Part shown: positions 21,973 to 62,398 of the stretch, piece after piece
Layout of the letters: each line of letters starts with the position of its first letter
Position numbering within the stretch: the first letter of the stretch is position 1
Virus record (IMG/VR): IMGVR_UViG_3300009514_000001
Span: 158,006-222,005 of that record
DNA length: 64,000 nt
Strand: one strand, 5' to 3'
Notes under the pieces: generated by a model
The model's input: the letters and a program-made list of their open reading frames with translations, nothing else
The model's database searches: none
Told to the model about the DNA's origin: nothing
Position numbers and translations under genes: made by a program

Positions 21973-22972
21973 TCAGTCGGACGTACTGAGCCTCCGGGCC
22001 TCCACATACTTGTTGGAGGTCTCCAGGGAGAGCCCCTGCATATAGCTGTAGAGAGTCACCCAGGATAGTCCCGTACCTTCCACCACAGCCCTTCGATCAA
22101 CCCTCCCCTCGCTATCCAGGAAGGGATCAAAATCCTGGAGAGTGAGGTTGGCCTTGAGGCCGTTGTCGGCCCAATGACCGTTCTCGGCAATGTAGCGACG
22201 TAGCTTCTCGGCCGCAGCAGCCACCCTCGCATCCGTCTCTTTGGTGAGACCTTTACGCCAGGACGGCCTGCCCTTCATCTTCTCGGCGCCCGCGGGTGGT
22301 CTTGATTCGGCGCCCGCGGGCGGTCTTGATTCGGACGGCAGACCCCAGAGCTACCGCCAAGGAACCTGGGTACTCCTCGGCATACCTACCCACCAGGTCA
22401 GGATGTTCAGACTTGATGTGAGAAGTGAGGTTCTCCGCCCGATGACCACAGACGCGACAACGAACGTAATCGAGGCCCTCCTCCTTGGTGGACCAGAACA
22501 GCTCCTCGTCTCGCTGTCGACACCCCTTACAGCGACAATCATGAGTAGTTGGGGAGAAGTACTTGGACTCCTGACGGGAAGCGCCGCAGGAAGGGCAGGC
22601 GACCTCTTTGGTCCCTTCTCTTGCGTCCTCAGACCACCCCTGTTGTATCGCCTTACTGCGCTTGGCTTTCAACGCAGGGGTACGGATGAGAGCCTCTGGG
22701 TGCCGCTCTCGATAGTCCTTGGCTGTGATGCCATGGGCCGCCTTCAGATGTCGAGCAAGAGTAACCGCTCGATGCGAGCAGTCCTCTTCCAGACATCGAA
22801 CATAGTCGACCCCTTCTACTTTCCCCTCCCACCTCTGGTCCTCCGACCACCTTTTGTAGGGAGGATGAGTCTCCGACTGATGGCGGAAATGAGATGCCAG
22901 ACCACGGCGGTCCGTACAGACGAAAGAACAGACAGGACAGGAAACCAAGACAACCTCCTCTAGAGCACCCAA
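21973..22972 (-). pseudogene. Degraded zinc-finger/NUMOD-type free-standing homing-endonuclease-like gene
   Basis: Two ORFs in different frames (22253-22972 and 21973-22278). Several C2H2/CxxC fingers (VEGVDYVRC, LDYVRCRVC) and WRKGLTKETD. A 24-bp tandem duplication (22283-22334) lies at the break. No nuclease domain visible. Confidence 0.6.
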
Positions 22973-30437: not shown

Positions 30438-32555
30438 TTAGTCGACCTCCTCGTACTCCTCCATGGCCTGGATGAGGAGGCCGCGGGCAACCGCGTTGAG
30501 GGGGTTCTCCGCCTGACGGATTTCGCTGATCTTGATGGGGAACCGGCGGCGGTGCTTCTTGAAGACCTTCTGGAAGAGATCCATGAACCCACCAGCCTTC
30601 GAGGTCCCTCCGCTGACGATGATGGGGATGGGGTTCGTCAGCTCAATCTGACAGTTCGCCACGAACTGCTCCGCCACCTTCTTGAGGGCGTAGGAGATAA
30701 GTTCCTCGTAGTAGAAGGACAGCGCCTCCCGGTCCCGGAACTTGGACTCCTCGCCTTCACTCGGGTCGAGGAGGTTGATCCCGGCCTCCTTGATGCGACA
30801 GATGCGAGAACGCGTCGAGTTACGGCTCTTGGCCGCCCCCGCGTCAATCCAGTCGCCACAGTTGTGGACAACCATACCCGGAGAGGAGAAGGAGTGATGT
30901 TTAGAGGCTACTCGGACATCGTAGACCCTGCCGTCGTAGGGAACTTGGTCAACCCTCTTAACGACGAAACAGGCGAAGTCCGGCTTCTGTGGGTGGAGGT
31001 TGACACCTTCGTGTGCAAGGAGAGTGTCCAGAAGGGTCTTGGATAGGTGACCGACAATACGAACGTCGTAACAAGGCTTACGACCCTCGATTCGCACCCC
31101 CTTTGAGTTGATTCCGCCCTGTCTGGGCGGTCTCTTGAGGACACTATGGCGAATTCCGAACCTGTTGAGTAGGTGATGCACCAACAACACCACATGTAGA
31201 GAGGTGTTGTGGATGGTGTGGCGCTTCTCCTCTTCCGTCGAGTCGCTATCCAGAAGACCCTCCAAAACCCCAAGTGCCATGCTGTCGGGGATATTACGCA
31301 CACTCAGAGGAAACGTCTTCTCCCCCTTCTCGTCGTAAAACCGGGCCTTCAGGTGCCGGGCGACAGGTGTGAGGTGGAGCTTTACCCTCGTAAGGTTCTC
31401 CTTCGGGTCATCAACGACCTCTACCTCACGATGAAACAGGACGGAGCACACCTGGGCATACTTGCGAACCAGGTGTTGGTCCCTGCGGTTGATTGCAAAC
31501 TGGACGAACCGCGAGTCCTCTGTCCGGGGTCCGCAAGAGCCGTCCCCCAGAAACATACCCAGGAATTTGCCTAGGTTCCTGGCAGTGGCAACGGTAATAT
31601 TCCGGCCCCCAAGGCGACCGAAGTAGTAAGGCCCAGAACACTTCTTCTCAGTCTGGATAGTCGGAACCCCGACAACGTCCCCCTCCCGAAGAGAGCCTGC
31701 GGCTACCCATTGCCAGCCGAACCGATCCCTCACGAAAACCCGGTGATCTCGGGTCATCTTGTGAGAGAACGCGGGAAGGTGCTCCAGGAACACCTCCACC
31801 AAAGAGTCCCGAGAACCGTTGTCCATCCTCTCTAGGACTTCGACAAACCTCCCCTGGGCGTCGAGAACGTAATCCCCCTCGCGTACCTCGGCCATCGGCA
31901 CAACGCCGCGACGGGTAATAACAGGAAAATCCCCCGCCAAACATCTGGAAATCGAAAATTCCAGGACCGGTCGGGTCTTGAAGCTCAGAGCGACATTCGT
32001 CATCCCCGATCCGAACGACATCGAGATACCAGTGTAGTCGTCCTTGAGGCCCTCGGAGAAGACGATGGCCATGGCCTCGTTCGAGTCCCAGGCCTCGTAG
32101 CCGCACTCGGTGATGATGCGCTCGAAGGCCTTCTTGTGGTAGATCACGTCCCTATCTGCGTCGATGGGGGCGGCGGGGACGCTGTAGTAGCAAATCTCCC
32201 CTTCCTCCTGAGGCTCGCCCAGGACGCTCCTCACCAGGATGCCGAGGATTTCGAGAGAGTCCACCTCGCTGGCCGACACAAGACCCTGGGCGAGAGGACG
32301 CCGGGCCTCCTCCCTCATGATGCCGGCAAGCTCCATGGCGTCATCGCCGACGACGATGAGGTCCTGGTCGCGCTCGACGAACGTGATCTTGCTCCGGCGG
32401 AGCATCTTCCGGTCGTCCTTGTCCAACGTGATGAACGCGTCGCGGACACGACGGTAGCTCACCTTGTCCGCCGTCTGCCTGGCCGCGACAAGATTCATGG
32501 TTCCGATGTCGAGGCCTATGCCTTTAACCACTTGAACTTGTTTATCTTTTCCCAT
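30438..32555 (-). CDS. Actin-fold (MreB/ParM/FtsA-like) ATPase containing a cis intein; about 344 aa after splicing
   Basis: Phosphate-1 GLDIGT, phosphate-2 SFGSGMTNV, adenosine motif IIVSGGTS, and C-terminal NAVARG. Confidence 0.8.
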   Translation of the reverse strand: MGKDKQVQVVKGIGLDIGTMNLVAARQTADKVSYRRVRDAFITLDKDDRKMLRRSKITFVERDQDLIVVGDDAMELAGIMREEARRPLAQGLVSASEVDSLEILGILVRSVLGEPQEEGEICYYSVPAAPIDADRDVIYHKKAFERIITECGYEAWDSNEAMAIVFSEGLKDDYTGISMSFGSGMTNVALSFKTRPVLEFSISRCLAGDFPVITRRGVVPMAEVREGDYVLDAQGRFVEVLERMDNGSRDSLVEVFLEHLPAFSHKMTRDHRVFVRDRFGWQWVAAGSLREGDVVGVPTIQTEKKCSGPYYFGRLGGRNITVATARNLGKFLGMFLGDGSCGPRTEDSRFVQFAINRRDQHLVRKYAQVCSVLFHREVEVVDDPKENLTRVKLHLTPVARHLKARFYDEKGEKTFPLSVRNIPDSMALGVLEGLLDSDSTEEEKRHTIHNTSLHVVLLVHHLLNRFGIRHSVLKRPPRQGGINSKGVRIEGRKPCYDVRIVGHLSKTLLDTLLAHEGVNLHPQKPDFACFVVKRVDQVPYDGRVYDVRVASKHHSFSSPGMVVHNCGDWIDAGAAKSRNSTRSRICRIKEAGINLLDPSEGEESKFRDREALSFYYEELISYALKKVAEQFVANCQIELTNPIPIIVSGGTSKAGGFMDLFQKVFKKHRRRFPIKISEIRQAENPLNAVARGLLIQAMEEYEEVD
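30861..31943 (-). mobile_element. Intein with LAGLIDADG endonuclease (361 aa)
   Basis: Starts CLAGDFPV; block B MTRDHRVF; endonuclease motifs LGMFLGDG and LEGLLDSD; block F VYDVRV; ends VVHN followed by Cys+1. Confidence 0.92.
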
Positions 32556-37651: not shown

Positions 37652-39115
37652 ATGAAGCAGTACCTCAACCTCCTTCGTGACATCCTGGACCATGGCCAAC
37701 AGAGAGGGGACCGCACAAACACCGGTACTATCAGTCTCTTCGGCCCACAGATGGAGTTCGACCTTCAAGAGGGATTCCCAGCGACCACGACCAAGAAACT
37801 CTTGTTTCGCAAGGTGAAGACGGAGCTTCTCTGGTTTCTTCGAGGAGGAACCAACGTGGCCTGGCTTCACGAGCACAACAACCACATTTGGGACGAGTGG
37901 ATGTTGTCTGACTTGGAAGTTGGAGTCCCCAGCGAAGAAAGACCCCTGATCTGGGTGGACCAGAAAAACGCGACCTCTGCCCCATTCTCCGGAAATCTCA
38001 GCACTCTGGGACTCGATGCCTCAAGAGGGTCGACGGACGACCGACTCCGAAACCTGTGGGTGAAGATCATGCAGAGGTGCTATGACTCCGACCACCACAA
38101 CTTCAGGTTCTACGGCGGAAGGGGGGTGGGTGTCGTCAAAGAGTGGCACGACGTGAACACCTTTGTGCACGGCGTGAAAAACCTACCTAACTGGGGACAC
38201 AAAAACCGTTCGTGGAACGAATACGAACTCGACAAAGACTACTACGGAGCGACAGCCTACGGCCCCGACACCTGCGTATGGCTCCATACGAGCGAGAACA
38301 ACTACTACACCCTGGCAGTATGTCCTGTCCGTATCACACCCCCGACTGGACGTCCCCTGATATACCTAACCCAGGCACACGCGGCACGAGACCTAGACAT
38401 CTCTACCTCTGCCATGAGCAGGTATTTAGAACGTGGCTCCATTGGTCGCCCCTACGGCAGAAGCAAGCGCCTCGAAGGGTGGGGGTTTGAGTACCTCAAG
38501 AGACCGGGAAAATTCCTGAGGATGGCTTTCTCAAAAGGCGATCTGGGCCCGGTGTATGGGTCTATGTGGAGATCATGGCCCAGCACAAACGGAGACATAG
38601 ACCAACTGGCAGGAGTCATCCATGGCATTCGGAACCACCCGGAGTCCAGGCGTCTTCTAGTGAGCGCTTGGAACGTCTCCCTCATTGAGAAGATGGCTTT
38701 ACCTCCCTGCCATATCCAATTCCAATTTTACGTGCGCCACGCCGATGACGGACCGGACTTCCTCGACTGCAAGATGTACCAACGCAGCGCCGACATGTTC
38801 CTCGGGGTGCCTTTCAACATCGCGTCCTACGCCCTGCTGACCCACATGATGGCGCAGGTATGCGAGTTGCGGCCGGGGCGCTTCGTCCACACCTTCGGGG
38901 ACGTCCACATCTACGCAAACCATGTCGACCAGGTCGAAGAACAGCTCTCAAGAGAGCCCGGGGAGGTTCCCTCCCTGTGGCTCAACCCCGACATTGACGA
39001 CATCGACGGCTTTGGTCCGAAGGACATCAGGCTGGTCGACTACAAACACCAAGGCGTCATTCGAGCCCCCATCGCTGTTGGGGGAACCGGATTCATCCCG
39101 ACCATCAAGGAGTAA
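37652..39115 (+). CDS. thyA: Thymidylate synthase with an in-frame endonuclease-like insertion
   Basis: Motifs DRTNTGT, ELLWFLRG, IWDEW, GDLGPVYG, MALPPCH, YQRSADMFLGVPFNIASY and GDVHIY. Confidence 0.95.
   Translation: MKQYLNLLRDILDHGQQRGDRTNTGTISLFGPQMEFDLQEGFPATTTKKLLFRKVKTELLWFLRGGTNVAWLHEHNNHIWDEWMLSDLEVGVPSEERPLIWVDQKNATSAPFSGNLSTLGLDASRGSTDDRLRNLWVKIMQRCYDSDHHNFRFYGGRGVGVVKEWHDVNTFVHGVKNLPNWGHKNRSWNEYELDKDYYGATAYGPDTCVWLHTSENNYYTLAVCPVRITPPTGRPLIYLTQAHAARDLDISTSAMSRYLERGSIGRPYGRSKRLEGWGFEYLKRPGKFLRMAFSKGDLGPVYGSMWRSWPSTNGDIDQLAGVIHGIRNHPESRRLLVSAWNVSLIEKMALPPCHIQFQFYVRHADDGPDFLDCKMYQRSADMFLGVPFNIASYALLTHMMAQVCELRPGRFVHTFGDVHIYANHVDQVEEQLSREPGEVPSLWLNPDIDDIDGFGPKDIRLVDYKHQGVIRAPIAVGGTGFIPTIKE
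37901..38536 (+). mobile_element. In-frame HNH-type homing-endonuclease-like insert with an HTH (about 212 aa) inside ThyA
   Basis: Lies between IWDEW and GDLGP. Sequence W..IMQRC...YGGRGV.V..EW...F...ELDKD...YGPDTCVW....NN, followed by a NUMOD1-like HTH AARDLDISTSAMSRYL. Confidence 0.75.
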
Positions 39116-44797: not shown

Positions 44798-45430
44798 CTA
44801 CAAAAACGACCTAGGACTCAACACGCCCCGACCGACAGCGGGGCCGAAACTCGACCGGATTCCGATGCCAAATCGAGGCTGTTGGAGTCCTCGGAGGAGC
44901 TTCGTGGTCTGAATCTTGACCTCGGTGGCGCCCTTCTCGAAGTGAGCCTCGGCCTGATTCTTCAGGCTCTGGTACTTGGAAGATTTCTCTATGTCGAGAC
45001 TGATACCGCCAATGGAATATGAGTTGTGGGCCACCACACCATTGGTCAGCACAAAGTTCTGGTCCCCCGGCACACACAGGTCATAGGTATGCTCCTGAGG
45101 CTCCAAACGCTCGACGGAGGCCACCTCCACCTCCCGAAGAGTCCCGTCAAACACCACAGCCAAAGGCATTCCAGGTTCGATGCTGGACCCCTCAACCGCA
45201 ACCAGGCAGTCCCCTTGACGCAAAAAGAGGCTGTGGTCCTCCGTGCAGACTACCGAGAGACCCCCTACCAGGGCCACACACACCATCTCTTTGTGGTCTG
45301 TTTGATGCTCCATCACATCTGACACCACAGACTCAGAGACCTCTCCCGTTTCCGGGGAAACGGACCTCACCTTCAGAGTTCCCGCCAGGAACTCCTCTCG
45401 AATAGCCCTTGCAAGGTCTTGGTCAATCAT
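44798..45430 (-). CDS. Split neck-like protein, part 3: IntC2 (136 aa) plus C-extein (74 aa)
   Basis: ATG 45430 with SD. Block B CTEDHSLF, block F TYDLCV, and terminus VVAHN followed by SYSIGGISLD. Confidence 0.88.
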   Translation of the reverse strand: MIDQDLARAIREEFLAGTLKVRSVSPETGEVSESVVSDVMEHQTDHKEMVCVALVGGLSVVCTEDHSLFLRQGDCLVAVEGSSIEPGMPLAVVFDGTLREVEVASVERLEPQEHTYDLCVPGDQNFVLTNGVVAHNSYSIGGISLDIEKSSKYQSLKNQAEAHFEKGATEVKIQTTKLLRGLQQPRFGIGIRSSFGPAVGRGVLSPRSFL

Positions 45431-46383
45431 CGCCTCTCCTCCACCGCTCGCCGCACCCGAGAGATACATCCCTGGAGATCATTTTTCACCGCATGTCCAG
45501 GGAGGCGGACAACCGCCCACCCTCGTCTTGTCAAGTAGGTCTTGCTTTTGTCCAAACGTTGTGTGTCTGGACGCCCATCAAAACCACACTCGACACACCC
45601 GTGCCAATAGCAACCATCGACTTCGACGGCGATCTTCAACTCCGGGTGTGCCTCATCTAGGTGGTAGTACCCCACCTCATATTCTGTTTGGAACCCGACC
45701 AGGCCGCTCTGCTCCAGCGCCCGGGTAACCTCTCGGTGGAGCCTCGTATGTTTCTTCGTGAGGTGTCTACGAGCATTCAGAGCGAGTGCGAGGGACTTCT
45801 CCCTGTTGTCCCTGTGCCACCTCTCCACCTGCCCTCGCAAAGGACCTTCTGCCCAACGCTTTCTCGTTTCCTCTCCTCTCTGAACCCTCTGTTCGGGGTC
45901 CTGATTGAGCTGGCGAAGATGAGCAGCGGCTTGTTCCTTGTACCCCGAGGCGTGTAGGAGAAGAGAGCTTTCCGAAATCCTCTCCCTCGTCTTTTCCCCC
46001 GCCGGAGTCTGGAACCTTTTCTTCAGGGTCTCTGACTGAGCTTCTCTCTGAGCAGGCGACTTTGCCTTGTTACTCTGACACAGCCCAGAAAGTACGCGAA
46101 CCTCCTGGTGGTTCTTTCGATAGTCCTCCAGAGACTTCCCGGAACATGCTCGCAAATGCCTAGTCGTCACCTGCGCTAGGAAAGCCCCACACTCCAAACA
46201 GACGACATAGTGTTCCCCCTCCACCAAGTTGCTCAGGGTAGAGGGGTCAATCTTACGTCGAAGAGGGGAGGAGGCATTCGGAAAGAAGGACAAAACACCC
46301 CGGCCCAAGAGGGTCGCCAGGGCTCTTTGATTGAACCCAAAACGCAACATTACCTGACGTTGGGAGAGACCCTTAGCGGACAT
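45427..46383 (-). CDS. Free-standing zinc-finger plus Vsr/DUF559-type endonuclease at split site 2
   Basis: ATG 46383. LVEGEHYVVCLEC finger; EYEVG...DEA...IAVEVDGCYWH...GWAVVRL. Confidence 0.8.
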   Translation of the reverse strand: MSAKGLSQRQVMLRFGFNQRALATLLGRGVLSFFPNASSPLRRKIDPSTLSNLVEGEHYVVCLECGAFLAQVTTRHLRACSGKSLEDYRKNHQEVRVLSGLCQSNKAKSPAQREAQSETLKKRFQTPAGEKTRERISESSLLLHASGYKEQAAAHLRQLNQDPEQRVQRGEETRKRWAEGPLRGQVERWHRDNREKSLALALNARRHLTKKHTRLHREVTRALEQSGLVGFQTEYEVGYYHLDEAHPELKIAVEVDGCYWHGCVECGFDGRPDTQRLDKSKTYLTRRGWAVVRLPGHAVKNDLQGCISRVRRAVEERR

Positions 46384-47146
46384 CGTGCACCACCCTATGC
46401 AAGACCGAAATGGGGAGATCAAACTCCCTGCCATCGGAAAGGATAACACGAACCAACGTATCCCCGGACACTGAAAACTCGTCAGCGACCCAGTTCGTCG
46501 CGAGGGCGAACATGGCGTAGACGATGGCGCCCCAGACGATGAAGGGCTTCCAGGTCGACTTCTGCTGGATGAGGATGTCGAGGTTGCACAGACCTTCCGT
46601 CTCTGGGGGGAAGGCGTTCCACCAGGCCAGGGCCATCTCCAAGTAGCAGAGCAGCTCCTCGTCGGTCCAAATCTGTCCGAAGACCCGATTGAAGGCGCCG
46701 ATTCGACCCTCATGCTCCGGGGGGCGGAAGTGGTAGTTCCGGTCGGGACTATTGCTGACGACCACGCCCGAGACTAGCAACTGGAAGTTGTGCCAACCGT
46801 CCACCGTCATATCGTACATGTATCGTCGCGAAGGGAGTTGGCGCTTATTGAGGACAGGAACTGTAGTGGAACAGCCAGCCTTCACGCCGAGCACCTCCTG
46901 TCCCACCTCCAAGCGCTCACACTCCACCTTCTCCGTGGGGGACACAAAGACCCTGTGACCTCCAGTAAGGACCATCACTCCGCCGTCAGTTTCCACTTCC
47001 CAGATAGATTCTTGAGGCACTTCGGCACGACTGACCTCTTGTACAGTACGCCACTCCGTCTCGCCCTCAGGGGAGACGGAGAGGGTGCGTAGGTGCCCTT
47101 TATGGAAAGCCTCACGAATCTTTTTCTTGGCTAGATCAGACAACAT
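46373..47146 (-). CDS. Split neck-like protein, part 2: IntC1 (132 aa) plus middle extein (92 aa) plus IntN2 (33 aa)
   Basis: Block B LTGGHRVF, block F MYDMTV, terminus VVSN followed by SPDRNY. Later ADEF followed by block-A-like SVSGDTLVRV. Confidence 0.88.
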   Translation of the reverse strand: MLSDLAKKKIREAFHKGHLRTLSVSPEGETEWRTVQEVSRAEVPQESIWEVETDGGVMVLTGGHRVFVSPTEKVECERLEVGQEVLGVKAGCSTTVPVLNKRQLPSRRYMYDMTVDGWHNFQLLVSGVVVSNSPDRNYHFRPPEHEGRIGAFNRVFGQIWTDEELLCYLEMALAWWNAFPPETEGLCNLDILIQQKSTWKPFIVWGAIVYAMFALATNWVADEFSVSGDTLVRVILSDGREFDLPISVLHRVVHDVR

Positions 47147-48035
47147 CGAACAGGTCCTCCTCTGTCCACACGAAGAACAACCACCCCCTCTTGGACGCCT
47201 CCCTATGGGCTCTATCCAACCTTCTTCGGACTTCGCTCTCGACGGGCATCTGGAGCGTCCAGGCGGCTTTTACTTCAACCAGAGCTGTCGCCCCGTCCAA
47301 ATAGGTGACAACAAAGTCCGGCAATATCCAACTACGGTCATCCAAGACGAGGCGTTTCTCGTACTCAAAGGAAACCACCTTGAAATCCGATTCCAGCTTC
47401 TCCACGGCGGCCTTCTCATAGGTGCTACGTACCCAGAACTCCTTCCTCTCACACTTCCCGGAAACTACCCTGGACCCTTTGCCCCGTATCCACTTTGCCG
47501 GGTCCTCTGCGATCCTCTTCGCCTGTTCCCGAGAACGTCGGACTCTCTCCTCCTGGCTTCTGTGGAATTCGAGGAGAGGGTCTCTATACGAGGGGTCCTT
47601 CCACAGACGACGAAATCTGTCTGAAATTCCCTGCCGTCTCTCGGGGGTAAAGGAGGCTCGGAGGCTGTCAATCTCTTCCGAGGACCTGATCCTCCCTCTC
47701 AGGCTATCAAAAACACCGTCTTGCCACATCTTTTCGAGTTGTCCGGGACGTTTCTTTCCCTTCCATTGCGCCCCAAGATGACGGCCGGCCTCGCGTCGTC
47801 GATCCATTGCTGCCTCGCACCTAACAGCCTTCGTCAACCGATGAATGCCTGCGATAGACAAGCCCGTAATTTGACTCATTTCCCCCCATGACTTACCCGA
47901 TTCATGGAGGAAGGTGACAATCCGAGACCTTTTCTCTCGAACCCCTTTGGGAGGTCTTCCCTTCTTAGAGAAAATCTCCCAAGAGAGACCCTCTTGTTCG
48001 AACAGAGAAGCCAATTCCGGATGGACACTACCCAC
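47136..48035 (-). CDS. Free-standing HTH plus TnsA-like PD-(D/E)xK endonuclease at split site 1
   Basis: GGAGG SD and GTG 48035. RSTYE...FEYE...PDFVV...VEVK. Confidence 0.8.
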   Translation of the reverse strand: MGSVHPELASLFEQEGLSWEIFSKKGRPPKGVREKRSRIVTFLHESGKSWGEMSQITGLSIAGIHRLTKAVRCEAAMDRRREAGRHLGAQWKGKKRPGQLEKMWQDGVFDSLRGRIRSSEEIDSLRASFTPERRQGISDRFRRLWKDPSYRDPLLEFHRSQEERVRRSREQAKRIAEDPAKWIRGKGSRVVSGKCERKEFWVRSTYEKAAVEKLESDFKVVSFEYEKRLVLDDRSWILPDFVVTYLDGATALVEVKAAWTLQMPVESEVRRRLDRAHREASKRGWLFFVWTEEDLFDVV

Positions 48036-48519
48036 GAAGAACCTCCCACAGGTCTCCCATGCGAACATCCATGAGAGTCCCGTCTACATCTAGTCGTACC
48101 AACTCTTCCTCCCCGACACAGTGATCTCTGAGTAGGAGGCGGAGCTTGTTGACGCAGTCCTGTTGGGCTCCTGTCAAGGTGGCGACGCTGATTCCCTTGG
48201 AGATGACCTGGAAGTCCATGACCACTTCCTGAGACGCCTCTCCCGGGTTGAGCGTGAACGTCCACCGGATACGGTAGTCCCCCGCGACTGCGCTCGGGGG
48301 GACGAACAGGGCTGCGTAGTACTCCCCGATGACCGGGTTGACCGGCTTGCGGGGAACTCCCGGGGGGATTGGCACTTCCGTCTGTGGAGGGCCGGGGTCC
48401 AGGTAGAACAGCTCGTAGCTGATCTCGAACACATTGGTCGGACAGCCGTTGGCATCTTGGAAGAAGATACACAGGTCGCCCCGCTGGACTTCCTGACCTG
48501 GTGTGAACTGGATGGCCAT
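48028..48519 (-). CDS. Split neck-like protein, part 1: N-extein (133 aa) plus IntN1 (30 aa)
   Basis: LRLLLRDH followed by CVGEEELVRLDVDGTLMDVRMGDLWEVLRG and stop; block-A pattern. Confidence 0.85.
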   Translation of the reverse strand: MAIQFTPGQEVQRGDLCIFFQDANGCPTNVFEISYELFYLDPGPPQTEVPIPPGVPRKPVNPVIGEYYAALFVPPSAVAGDYRIRWTFTLNPGEASQEVVMDFQVISKGISVATLTGAQQDCVNKLRLLLRDHCVGEEELVRLDVDGTLMDVRMGDLWEVLRG

Positions 48520-61014: not shown

Positions 61015-61160
61015 CCGTTCTCCGAAACTTATGAAAATCTAGGTACACCTTGACTCCTGTTCGGTTCCTGCTTCATCGAGGCCGCCACCAGGAGACTAAC
61101 ATCCCCCGCCGGTCTTACGTCCTCTCCACAGACTGACACCGGGGAACTCCCGGCCAACTG
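61015..61160 (-). ncRNA. Putative omegaRNA scaffold/right end overlapping the tnpB 3' end
   Basis: TnpB omegaRNAs are known to overlap the gene's 3' end. The region ends ...GTTTCGGAGAACGG, and a similar 31-mer recurs at 63866-63896. Boundaries are inferred. Confidence 0.5.
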
Positions 61161-62288
61161 TTTCAAATTGATTGCGGCGTTCAGGTCTCGGCCAACACGG
61201 AGGCCACATTCGCCACACTGATACACGCGGTCCGACAAACTCAAGTCAGACTTTACTTTCCCGCATCCGGAACACGTCTTCGAACTAGGAAACCACCGGT
61301 CCGCCTCGATGACCTCAACTCCGGCCCACTCGGCCTTGTAGGCCAACTGTCGTAGGAACTCGGATAACGAGGCATCCGACAACGCTCTGGAGAGACGCCG
61401 GTTCTTCAGCATCCCAGAAACGTTGAGCGTCTCGACCACCAGGACATCAGCACTCTCTACGATCTCACTGGTCGCCTTGTGCAATGCATCCTTGCGGAGG
61501 CACGACACCCGATAGTAGAGACGAGCTACTCTGGCTCGGGCTTTCGCTCTGTTCCTGCTGCCTTTCTGTTTTCTGGCTAGTGCCTTCTGAGCCCGCCGCA
61601 AACGGCGCTGGCACCGGGCCAGGGCACGAGGGTTCTCGAATACCTGTCCGTCACTCGTTACCGCAAGAGACTTGATTCCGACATCCACCCCAACCACTTT
61701 GGTTCTCGGTCGCTGGGGCATTGTCAGAACGGTCTGCTTGACAGATAGAGAAACGAACCACCTACCGGCTCTACAAGAGACAGTGGCCGACAGGATTTTC
61801 ACGTCTTCCCTCTCGGGTCCCGGAAGATATCCAACCTCTTTCAGTCGAATCCATCCGAGCCTCGGGAGCTTGATGCTACGACCATCTTCGGAGGTCTTGA
61901 TGGACCCGGTCAGACGGAACTTGAGAGGGCTCCGATGACGGCTCTTGAATCTCGGGAACCCTTTCCTCTTCGCTCCCTTCTTACAGCGCCGGAAGAATCC
62001 TCTGAAGGCCCTATCAAGGTCTCTCAGAGCTTCCTGAGGAGCACACTTGGACACGCCATACATCCAAGGAACGCCACCTTCTTCGGGGTCGGTCCTCTTG
62101 AGCTTGTTCAGCTCCCGATGGAGTTCGATGTTGTTCGGGGACTTCCCGGTGCTCTTGTAGGTCTCTATCTTCTGTTGGAGCCCCCAGTTGTAGGCCCAAC
62201 GAGCCGCTCCCGCATGGCACCGAAGTGCCGTGCGCTGGCGGTTGTTCGGGTCCAACTCGACCCGATATGCTCGTTGGACGACGGACAT
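61029..62288 (-). CDS. tnpB: TnpB RNA-guided endonuclease (IS200/IS605 or IS607 family), no adjacent tnpA
   Basis: N-terminal AYRVELDPN...RWAYNW; GFPRFK; RuvC motifs VGVDVG, VVETL and RDLNAA; zinc ribbon CSGC/CGEC. Likely ATG 62288. Confidence 0.92.
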   Translation of the reverse strand: MSVVQRAYRVELDPNNRQRTALRCHAGAARWAYNWGLQQKIETYKSTGKSPNNIELHRELNKLKRTDPEEGGVPWMYGVSKCAPQEALRDLDRAFRGFFRRCKKGAKRKGFPRFKSRHRSPLKFRLTGSIKTSEDGRSIKLPRLGWIRLKEVGYLPGPEREDVKILSATVSCRAGRWFVSLSVKQTVLTMPQRPRTKVVGVDVGIKSLAVTSDGQVFENPRALARCQRRLRRAQKALARKQKGSRNRAKARARVARLYYRVSCLRKDALHKATSEIVESADVLVVETLNVSGMLKNRRLSRALSDASLSEFLRQLAYKAEWAGVEVIEADRWFPSSKTCSGCGKVKSDLSLSDRVYQCGECGLRVGRDLNAAINLKQLAGSSPVSVCGEDVRPAGDVSLLVAASMKQEPNRSQGVPRFS

Positions 62289-62398
62289 GGCTACTCGTTC
62301 CTCTTTTGGATTGAGGGGACCGGTGGGCCCAGAACCCCCGGGTAGGTCCAGAGCACCTACCAGGGGGTGTTCAATCAAACGAGTATCGTCTCGGGACC

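Follow-up and report, generated by a model that had tools for sequence, protein, structure and literature searches.

Split inteins, fractured genes, inteins cut close to their N-terminus and inteins with serine as the first residue (Ser1 inteins) are each already known. Tandem trans-splicing of three segments with two orthogonal split inteins was reportedly achieved by Shi and Muir in 2005, and Scott et al. are said to have introduced in 1999 the cyclisation of peptides and proteins by SICLOPPS (split-intein circular ligation of peptides and proteins), in which the target lies between the C-terminal part (IntC) and the N-terminal part (IntN) of one intein on one chain. Here we analyse a window of 64,000 nucleotides, bases 158006-222005 of the 222,005-bp IMG/VR virus record IMGVR_UViG_3300009514_000001, which has direct terminal repeats, and describe in it what appears to be one conserved virion gene broken at two points, each time by a split intein with its own putative endonuclease gene. 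Five tightly packed open reading frames (ORFs) on the minus strand, from 48519 to 44798, encode in this order ext1-IntN1 (piece 1), HE1, IntC1-ext2-IntN2 (piece 2), HE2 and IntC2-ext3 (piece 3), where ext1 to ext3 are the three exteins and HE1 and HE2 are putative free-standing homing endonucleases, one between the halves of each intein.

The closest described systems are the fractured genes of Dassa et al. 2009 (PMC2677866). In the passages of that paper drawn on here, they have in common with our locus the order extein-IntN, endonuclease ORF, IntC-extein on a single strand, a phage or metagenomic source, an endonuclease stop codon that overlaps the downstream start, and a Vsr-like endonuclease (here the candidate is HE2); the terminase locus described there also has a long C-part, of 122 aa, that lacks only motif N1. 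With respect to the same passages, our locus differs in that its host is a predicted virion structural protein instead of a DNA-metabolism enzyme, in that HE1 is a TnsA-N-like PD-(D/E)XK protein and not a GIY-YIG or Vsr-like one, and in that one gene is fractured twice, which creates a middle IntC-extein-IntN piece. No doubly fractured gene was found in those passages. Atypically split inteins resemble ours in their short IntN, of 15-25 aa as against our 30 and 33 aa, and in a long IntC that contains blocks B, F and G, and one of them, PolB16, also has the Ser1/Ser+1 pair and the NX-motif His of our second intein; however, their exteins and insertion sites are other ones, no close sequence relationship was found, and an extra IntC helix is present here. 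Inteins that combine an atypical split with Ser1/Ser+1 and the NX motif have been described (PMC10189870). Engineered tandem trans-splicing (PMC12707363) likewise uses three chains, with a middle IntC(a)-segment-IntN(b), and likewise needs two pairs that do not cross-react, but it is man-made from unrelated inteins, whereas the present arrangement is natural, lies in an operon-like row and uses related inteins. No account of a natural gene whose product is put together by two split inteins out of three chains was found in the full-text collection searched, which does not cover all journals, or in the passages of PMC2677866.

In the reading that we favour, with a probability of about 0.75, the three pieces would undergo an ordered and mostly orthogonal tandem trans-splicing into a structural protein of ~299 aa. 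IntN1 (30 aa, Cys1, very acidic) on piece 1 would pair with IntC1 at the front of piece 2. For the second junction, piece 2 would supply IntN2 (33 aa, Ser1), with which it ends, and the partner would be IntC2, with which piece 3 begins. Two class-1 trans-splicing reactions would then join ext1-ext2-ext3, with Ser at both junctions. We infer that splicing does occur and that any cross-reaction between the two pairs is too slight to be of consequence.

The exact extein boundaries are established by comparison with uninterrupted homologues. A search with ext2 returned 352 homologues at E<=0.01, and the architecture counts given here cover the best 120 clusters, among which ext2 identity is 58-77%; uninterrupted proteins, 297-302 aa in length, make up 67 of these 120. 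Piece 2, which an earlier sequence-only reading had described as an IntC-extein-IntN fragment, is indeed a real ORF that translates to 257 aa and consists of a 132-aa IntC1, a 92-aa ext2 (residues 133-224) and a 33-aa IntN2 (residues 225-257). Residues 133-224 match the middle of the 297-302-aa homologues end to end, and residues 225-257 have no counterpart in them. Ext1 aligns to residues 1-133 of the uninterrupted homologues (77% identity with P0002) and ext3 to their C-terminal 72-74 residues (58-80% identity), while IntN1 is missing from them and corresponds to the first ~30 aa of the contiguous site-1 inteins of P0009, P0025 and P0106. The three exteins, which sum to 299 aa, are contiguous without a gap in uninterrupted homologues, the closest of which among the best 120 is 77% identical; one such homologue is 72-77% identical to the exteins of this phage.

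At the points where the gene is broken, the uninterrupted proteins run straight across, as ...LRD(N/Q/H)-N-PD(R/K)NYHF... at site 1 and as ...NWVADEF-D-YSIGG... at site 2. Since they do so at both junctions, the segment that starts SVSGDT is intein; the concern of the sequence-only reading that it might be ordinary extein sequence in homologues is not borne out, the IntN2 segment being absent from the uninterrupted proteins. A second, unsplit copy of the extein gene was not found in the 222-kb genome. With intein halves on separate ORFs and exteins that jointly match an uninterrupted homologue, the locus is, as judged from its sequence, a fractured gene with split inteins.

Both inteins are classed here as atypically split near the N-terminus, with IntN parts of 30 and 33 aa and IntC parts of 132 and 136 aa that hold blocks B, F and G. 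IntC2 scores 38.9 bits against Pfam Intein_splicing, over the cut-off, and a profile of IntC1-type and IntC2-type inteins matches solved inteins at E 6.6e-14, the alignments beginning ~30-35 residues into those inteins. Contiguous forms of both inteins occur in homologues, with a ~12-aa linker exactly at the position that the endonuclease gene takes here. P0131 carries both inteins in cis, and the contiguous site-2 inteins of P0129, P0131 and P0164 join IntN2-type to IntC2-type sequence.

Conservation at the catalytic positions was counted over the 92 inteins of the family (47 at site 1, 36 at site 2 and 9 at a further site, 1b) and is clear for the inteins of both sites. The Thr and His of block B and the terminal Asn are kept in 92/92 (the Asn thus in 47/47 site-1 and 36/36 site-2 inteins), and the Asp of block F is essentially invariant across the 47 site-1 and 36 site-2 inteins. 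Cys1 is present in 15/15 split homologues at site 1 and in 8/8 contiguous site-1 inteins whose start was located (9 examined), and Ser1 in 34/34 homologous site-2 N-parts. The +1 residue of every intein-bearing allele is Ser, or Cys in four alleles, and that of intein-free alleles is mostly Asn at site 1 and Asp at site 2. By their nucleophile at position 1, block B Thr-x-x-His, block F Asp, terminal Asn and +1 residue, both inteins are assigned to class 1 (HINT). Some intein-free alleles do have Ser at +1 (P0024, P0071, P0090 and P0109 at site 1, 13 clusters at site 2); an intein may have been lost precisely from these alleles and have left a footprint, or they may be primed for invasion.

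The two active sites are built differently. The penultimate residue is Ser in 36/47 site-1 (Cys1) inteins and His in 36/36 site-2 (Ser1) inteins, block-F position 13 is His in 44/47 of the former and Glu or Gln in 36/36 of the latter, and the NX-motif position is His in only 2/47 site-1 inteins as against 36/36 at site 2 and 9/9 at site 1b. The residue before the NX His is Arg or Lys in 29/36 site-2 inteins and Glu in the copy of the window (VMEH). An NX-motif His is reported to be specific to, and critical for, Ser1 inteins (PMC10189870), and its distribution across the site-1 and site-2 inteins matches this rule; intein 2, with Ser1, Ser+1 and a His upstream of block B, belongs to the Ser1 NX-motif class. 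In the window, site 1 thus presents Cys1, a penultimate Ser and a block-F His, and site 2 the Ser1/Ser+1 pair, a penultimate His and the NX-motif His. The sequence-only reading had noticed that IntN2 starts with Ser and that IntC1 ends in Ser-Asn, and had called these catalytic residues unusual. In the sequence, the Ser-Asn of IntC1 is followed by Ser+1. The residues were read correctly, but this phage is not exceptional in having them: they are conserved in the respective intein families and represent minority types that are already known.

The likeness that had been seen between the N-termini of IntC1 and IntC2 is real and extends over their full length (34% identity over ~130 aa; phmmer E 1e-8). 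This is an intein-rich genome: Intein_splicing matches number at least 10 and are spread over several long ORFs. In its 222 kb, IntC1 and IntC2 are each other's only full-length intein match. IntN1 and IntN2 are identical at 9/30 residues with one indel (z 3.0 against shuffles), and IntN1 matches the IntN2 of P0120 by BLAST. The extra N-terminal helix of the IntC parts (profile positions 1-18) is unmatched by other inteins, and in a profile search of 1.84 billion representatives nearly all full-profile matches, the first 18 positions included, belong to this extein family.

In a quick maximum-likelihood tree, in which many forks are unresolved, the inteins of sites 1 and 2 all group together, with a Shimodaira-Hasegawa-like approximate likelihood ratio test (SH-aLRT) support of 98. 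Within this group, a clade of the 47 site-1 rows (support 83) stands beside another, with support 97, that is formed by the site-2 inteins, 12 inteins of other proteins and 8 inteins at a third site. The proposal that the two inteins are paralogous therefore stands in the sense of one intein subfamily, but they are not recent copies of one another. A recent intragenic duplication was rejected, as the inteins lie in different clades and other proteins, too, have inteins in the clade of site 2. The third site, 1b, lies seven residues downstream of site 1, between NPDRNY and (S/T)FRPP, and is occupied by Ser1-type inteins of the site-2 clade in P0132, P0170, P0183, P0157, P0163, P0172, P0193, P0260 and P0155.

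The layout recurs in other, uncultured phages. Besides the 67 clusters with no intein at either site, the best 120 comprise 16 that are split at site 2 only, 13 split at site 1 only, 10 split at both sites (IntC1-ext2-IntN2), 3 with a contiguous intein 1 and a split intein 2, and 11 fragments (truncated or short calls). The two splits co-occur above independence (odds ratio 3.2, p 0.027, relatedness not corrected for), independent contigs from other samples share the split points, and the intermediate forms, in cis or split and with or without an endonuclease, are all present among the homologues. Two other loci, L009 and L010, keep the gene order of the window. L009 has an HE1 homologue and a different ORF at site 2. 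L010 also has an HE1 homologue, and its pieces 2 and 3 are separated by only 128 bp (L010:5775-5902) with no ORF; therefore, the split intein persists there without an endonuclease. LR745208, a 485-kb uncultured phage, is split at site 1 only and has an HE1 homologue. P0170 is a middle piece formed with site-1b and site-2 inteins, both of Ser1 type, so that two or more combinations of inteins have given rise to the IntC-extein-IntN layout. The ORF between pieces 2 and 3 in L009 (L009:1423-2718) encodes 431 aa, is rich in Lys and Glu and gave no nuclease match; downstream of piece 3 (L009:3436-4851) lies a DUF7487 protein with a Vsr-like C-terminus.

Mechanistically, insulation between the two pairs would probably have three layers: pairing surfaces, active-site chemistry and order of synthesis. 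First, the pairing surfaces would have diverged, the N-parts being set apart by an indel of one residue and by charge swaps at some six exposed positions. The net charge is -7 +/- 1 for IntN1 and -6 for IntC2, and since both are acidic the pair that would lead to exon skipping is expected to be disfavoured. Second, the IntC1 pocket would activate Ser1 of IntN2 poorly, because IntC1 lacks the NX His that Ser1 inteins need. Third, the gene order suggests that piece 1 would be made first and that IntC1 would leave the ribosome ~125 residues ahead of IntN2.

Several observations weigh against tandem splicing by two insulated pairs. IntC1 alone matches Pfam Intein_splicing only at E 6.6e-4, under the curated cut-off, and IntN1 and IntN2 have a common hydrophobic pattern facing the core. 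The combination of IntN2 with IntC1 is not electrostatically disfavoured; charge complementarity was consequently rejected as the sole specificity rule, as it speaks against IntN1-IntC2 and not against IntN2-IntC1. Chemical mismatch, for its part, cannot be the general insulating mechanism, since P0170 is a natural middle piece flanked by two Ser1-type inteins, and as a general rule it is weakened to that extent. Finally, an AlphaFold2 model of the middle piece alone gives IntN2 as two strands with a predicted local distance difference test score (pLDDT) of 96-97. Such a confident IntN2 would fit a cis docking on IntC1, but AlphaFold tends to complete folds, and the model does not discriminate between the possibilities.

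These points bear directly on whether the inteins cross-react meaningfully, which we regard as unlikely. Besides the full-length protein, cross-reaction would give a circular or polymerised 92-aa ext2 (IntN2 with IntC1) or an ext1-ext3 product (IntN1 with IntC2), and the junction strings that had been predicted for these products, DEF-SPDR for the circle and RDH-SYSIG for pieces 1 and 3, do follow from the sequence. The halves are homologous (C-parts 34% identical, N-parts with 9/30 residues and the hydrophobic register in common), IntC1 and IntN2 sit on one chain and would thus meet at high effective concentration, and AlphaFold2 folds IntN2 confidently in the isolated middle piece. However, split inteins as diverged as these are usually orthogonal when tested (PMC7090010, PMC12707363), IntC1 is without the NX His needed by Ser1 inteins (PMC10189870), and IntN1 and IntC2 are both acidic. 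The comparison of piece 2 with SICLOPPS that had been drawn is apt for the order IntC-target-IntN, but not for the pairing: IntC1 and IntN2 are non-cognate, belong to different sites and clades, and have their own partners encoded nearby. As a whole, the indirect evidence favours productive, mostly orthogonal splicing, because the layout recurs and is not depleted among homologues, because this is the genome's only copy of a conserved gene and because of the different construction of the two active sites.

A related proposal, which we find rather improbable, is that the middle piece is poised between linear assembly and self-cyclisation into a ~10.8-kDa circle (or the production of an ext1-ext3 short form), and that the balance between these fates depends on the order in which the three pieces are synthesised and on how much of each there is. 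If true, this would be a protein-level alternative splicing in a phage.

It is very unlikely, in our estimation, that the pieces assemble without peptide bonds, the intein halves acting as docking modules that hold three chains together in the virion, a situation that can be likened to the intein-free fragmented NrdA of phage Aeh1. The binding between the halves of a split intein is tight, and fractured genes without splicing are known (PMC3045599, and the passages used here of PMC2677866), but both intein families retain every residue that the chemistry alone requires (Cys1 or Ser1, the Thr and His of block B, the Asp of block F and the terminal Asn), a Ser or Cys replaces the native Asn or Asp at +1, and ~330 extra intein residues would need room at a conserved site of the virion. 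Least probable is a decaying non-functional remnant, or a misassembled gene with two ordinary endonuclease-containing inteins: the contig is metagenomic and CheckV gives it as 42% complete despite its terminal repeats, but all five ORFs are intact, the endonuclease ORFs lie in other frames with coupled overlaps, the same split points occur on independent contigs of other samples, and the exteins are 72-77% identical to the uninterrupted homologue.

The features of the locus are collected in Table 1. At each junction of the row, successive ORFs overlap, start over stop, by 4 to 11 bases, and a purine-rich, Shine-Dalgarno-like run precedes each downstream start. The five ORFs are thus predicted to form a translationally coupled row; a similar overlap coupling is reported for fractured genes in the consulted passages of PMC2677866. 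Piece 3 most likely starts at ATG 45430 (MIDQDL), because GGAGGAG precedes this ATG, which forms ATGA with the stop of HE2, and the true start of HE1 is likely a GTG near 48037, after GGGAGG. Longer ORF calls (HE2 as 45427-46713, the piece 3 start at 45469 and the HE1 start at 48068) were dropped because the alternative starts have coupling overlaps and Shine-Dalgarno-like runs. A comparison of the locus DNA with GenBank phages gave no match.

Table 1. Pieces, exteins, intein parts and putative endonucleases of the twice-fractured gene (window coordinates).
Feature	Coordinates	Strand	Description
Piece 1	48028-48519	minus	133-aa extein + 30-aa IntN1
ext1	48121..48519	minus	N-terminal extein, residues 1-133 of ORF 48028..48519; end ...LLLRDH
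IntN1	48028..48120	minus	30-aa N-part of split intein 1, starts CVGEEE (Cys1); + stop codon
HE1	47136..48068	minus	putative free-standing homing endonuclease, PD-(D/E)XK, TnsA-N-like
Piece 2	46373..47146	minus	IntC1-ext2-IntN2
IntC1	46751..47146	minus	132-aa C-part of split intein 1; block B TGGH, block F YDMTVDGWHNF, end VVVSN
ext2	46475..46750	minus	92-aa middle extein, SPDRNYHF...NWVADEF
IntN2	46373..46474	minus	33-aa N-part of split intein 2, starts SVSGDT (Ser1); + stop codon
HE2	45427..46383	minus	putative free-standing homing endonuclease, 318 aa from ATG 46383
Piece 3	44798-45430	minus	IntC2 of 136 aa, then 74-aa extein
IntC2	45023..45430	minus	136-aa C-part of split intein 2; NX-motif His (VMEH), block B TEDH, end VVAHN
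ext3	44798..45022	minus	74-aa C-terminal extein, SYSIGGISLD...; + stop codon

HE1 matches Pfam Tn7_TnsA-like_N at E 1.5e-4, under the cut-off, and has homologues with 39-50% identity at the same place in L009, L010 and L012. HE2 scores 22.1 bits against Pfam DUF559, just above the cut-off of 20.6, and only E 0.037 against Vsr; its match to MTES_1575 is also weak. The motif EVDGCYWHG was seen by eye in its Vsr-like/DUF559 core. HE2 would share this Glu-x-Asp...Trp-His-Gly arrangement, and its position inside a fractured gene, with Vsr-like or EDxHD endonucleases such as I-Bth0305I (PMC3239194, and the passages of PMC2677866 that treat them), but differs from them in its putative N-terminal DNA-binding region, which contains a ROS/MucR-like zinc-finger region.

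HE2-like sequence also stands directly upstream of IntC2-ext3 in P0167, P0202, P0175 and P0187, where it is fused in frame to IntC2-ext3, whereas the ORFs of the window merely overlap as ATGA. Such a fusion may be intermediate between an endonuclease that stands free and one embedded in an intein. Elsewhere in the window, at 22604-22906 (G000:C1:180609-180911), there is a weak match to the N-terminal, non-nuclease part of HE2 (31% over 111 aa, E 1e-5), which may be a DNA-binding module common to both.

Concerning the host protein, Pfam and PHROG searches with the extein pieces and with uninterrupted homologues gave no family match. An AlphaFold2 model of an uninterrupted homologue (mean pLDDT 78) shows an N-terminal immunoglobulin (Ig)-like beta-sandwich and a helical C-terminal half, and both intein sites lie in or beside low-confidence linkers of this model. 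Foldseek returned partial Ig-like/BppU-N-like and baseplate Ig matches, none of them at E<=0.001 in the PDB; its best viral match (2.9e-10) is to unnamed proteins, and the unnamed phage matches include gp165 of Bacillus phage G. In the cultured jumbo phage Tunturi_5, a relative with 32.5% identity, gp319, bears the annotation of a head-tail connector and adjoins tail genes, and atlas searches gave mixed leads (connector, adaptor or neck families), which are taken as leads only. With modest confidence, the extein is probably a virion structural protein of the neck or connector region; this function is drawn from one annotation in a relative and from weak fold leads. The genes near the locus include a tail-fibre-like protein and otherwise have no family match.

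Other features of the genome were also recorded. Among the long ORFs with Intein_splicing matches that lie outside the window are one of 2414 aa with several separate matches (G000:C1:69126-76367, minus strand) and others of 962, 1015 and 1368 aa. Within the window, a 705-aa ORF at 30438-32555 (minus) matches Volactin, an actin-like family, at E 9e-68 and contains a contiguous intein with a LAGLIDADG domain. The thymidylate synthase at 37652-39115 (plus) has 487 aa against a profile of 266 positions; its in-frame insertion of ~200 aa (around residues 85-290) carries a YGGRGV motif, gives no intein match and may be a DNA-binding or endonuclease-like domain. An ORF of the TnpB/OrfB_IS605 type, with helix-turn-helix, OrfB and Cas12f1-like TNB domains, lies at 61029-62378 (minus).

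If the tandem splicing proposed here is true, nature would have solved the three-segment orthogonality problem, and would have done so using two related inteins. Dozens of cognate pairs would then be available from nature in this family, with N-parts of 30 aa that lie within reach of peptide synthesis, and catalytically cysteine-free (Ser1/Ser+1) pairs would be among them; very few efficient cysteine-free split pairs exist (PMC12707363). Among the homologues we find the empty site, the contiguous mini-intein, the split intein with or without an endonuclease, and the endonuclease fused to IntC. Spanning every evolutionary stage at three sites, this set would constitute an unusually complete series for the splitting of inteins and the emergence of new specificities.

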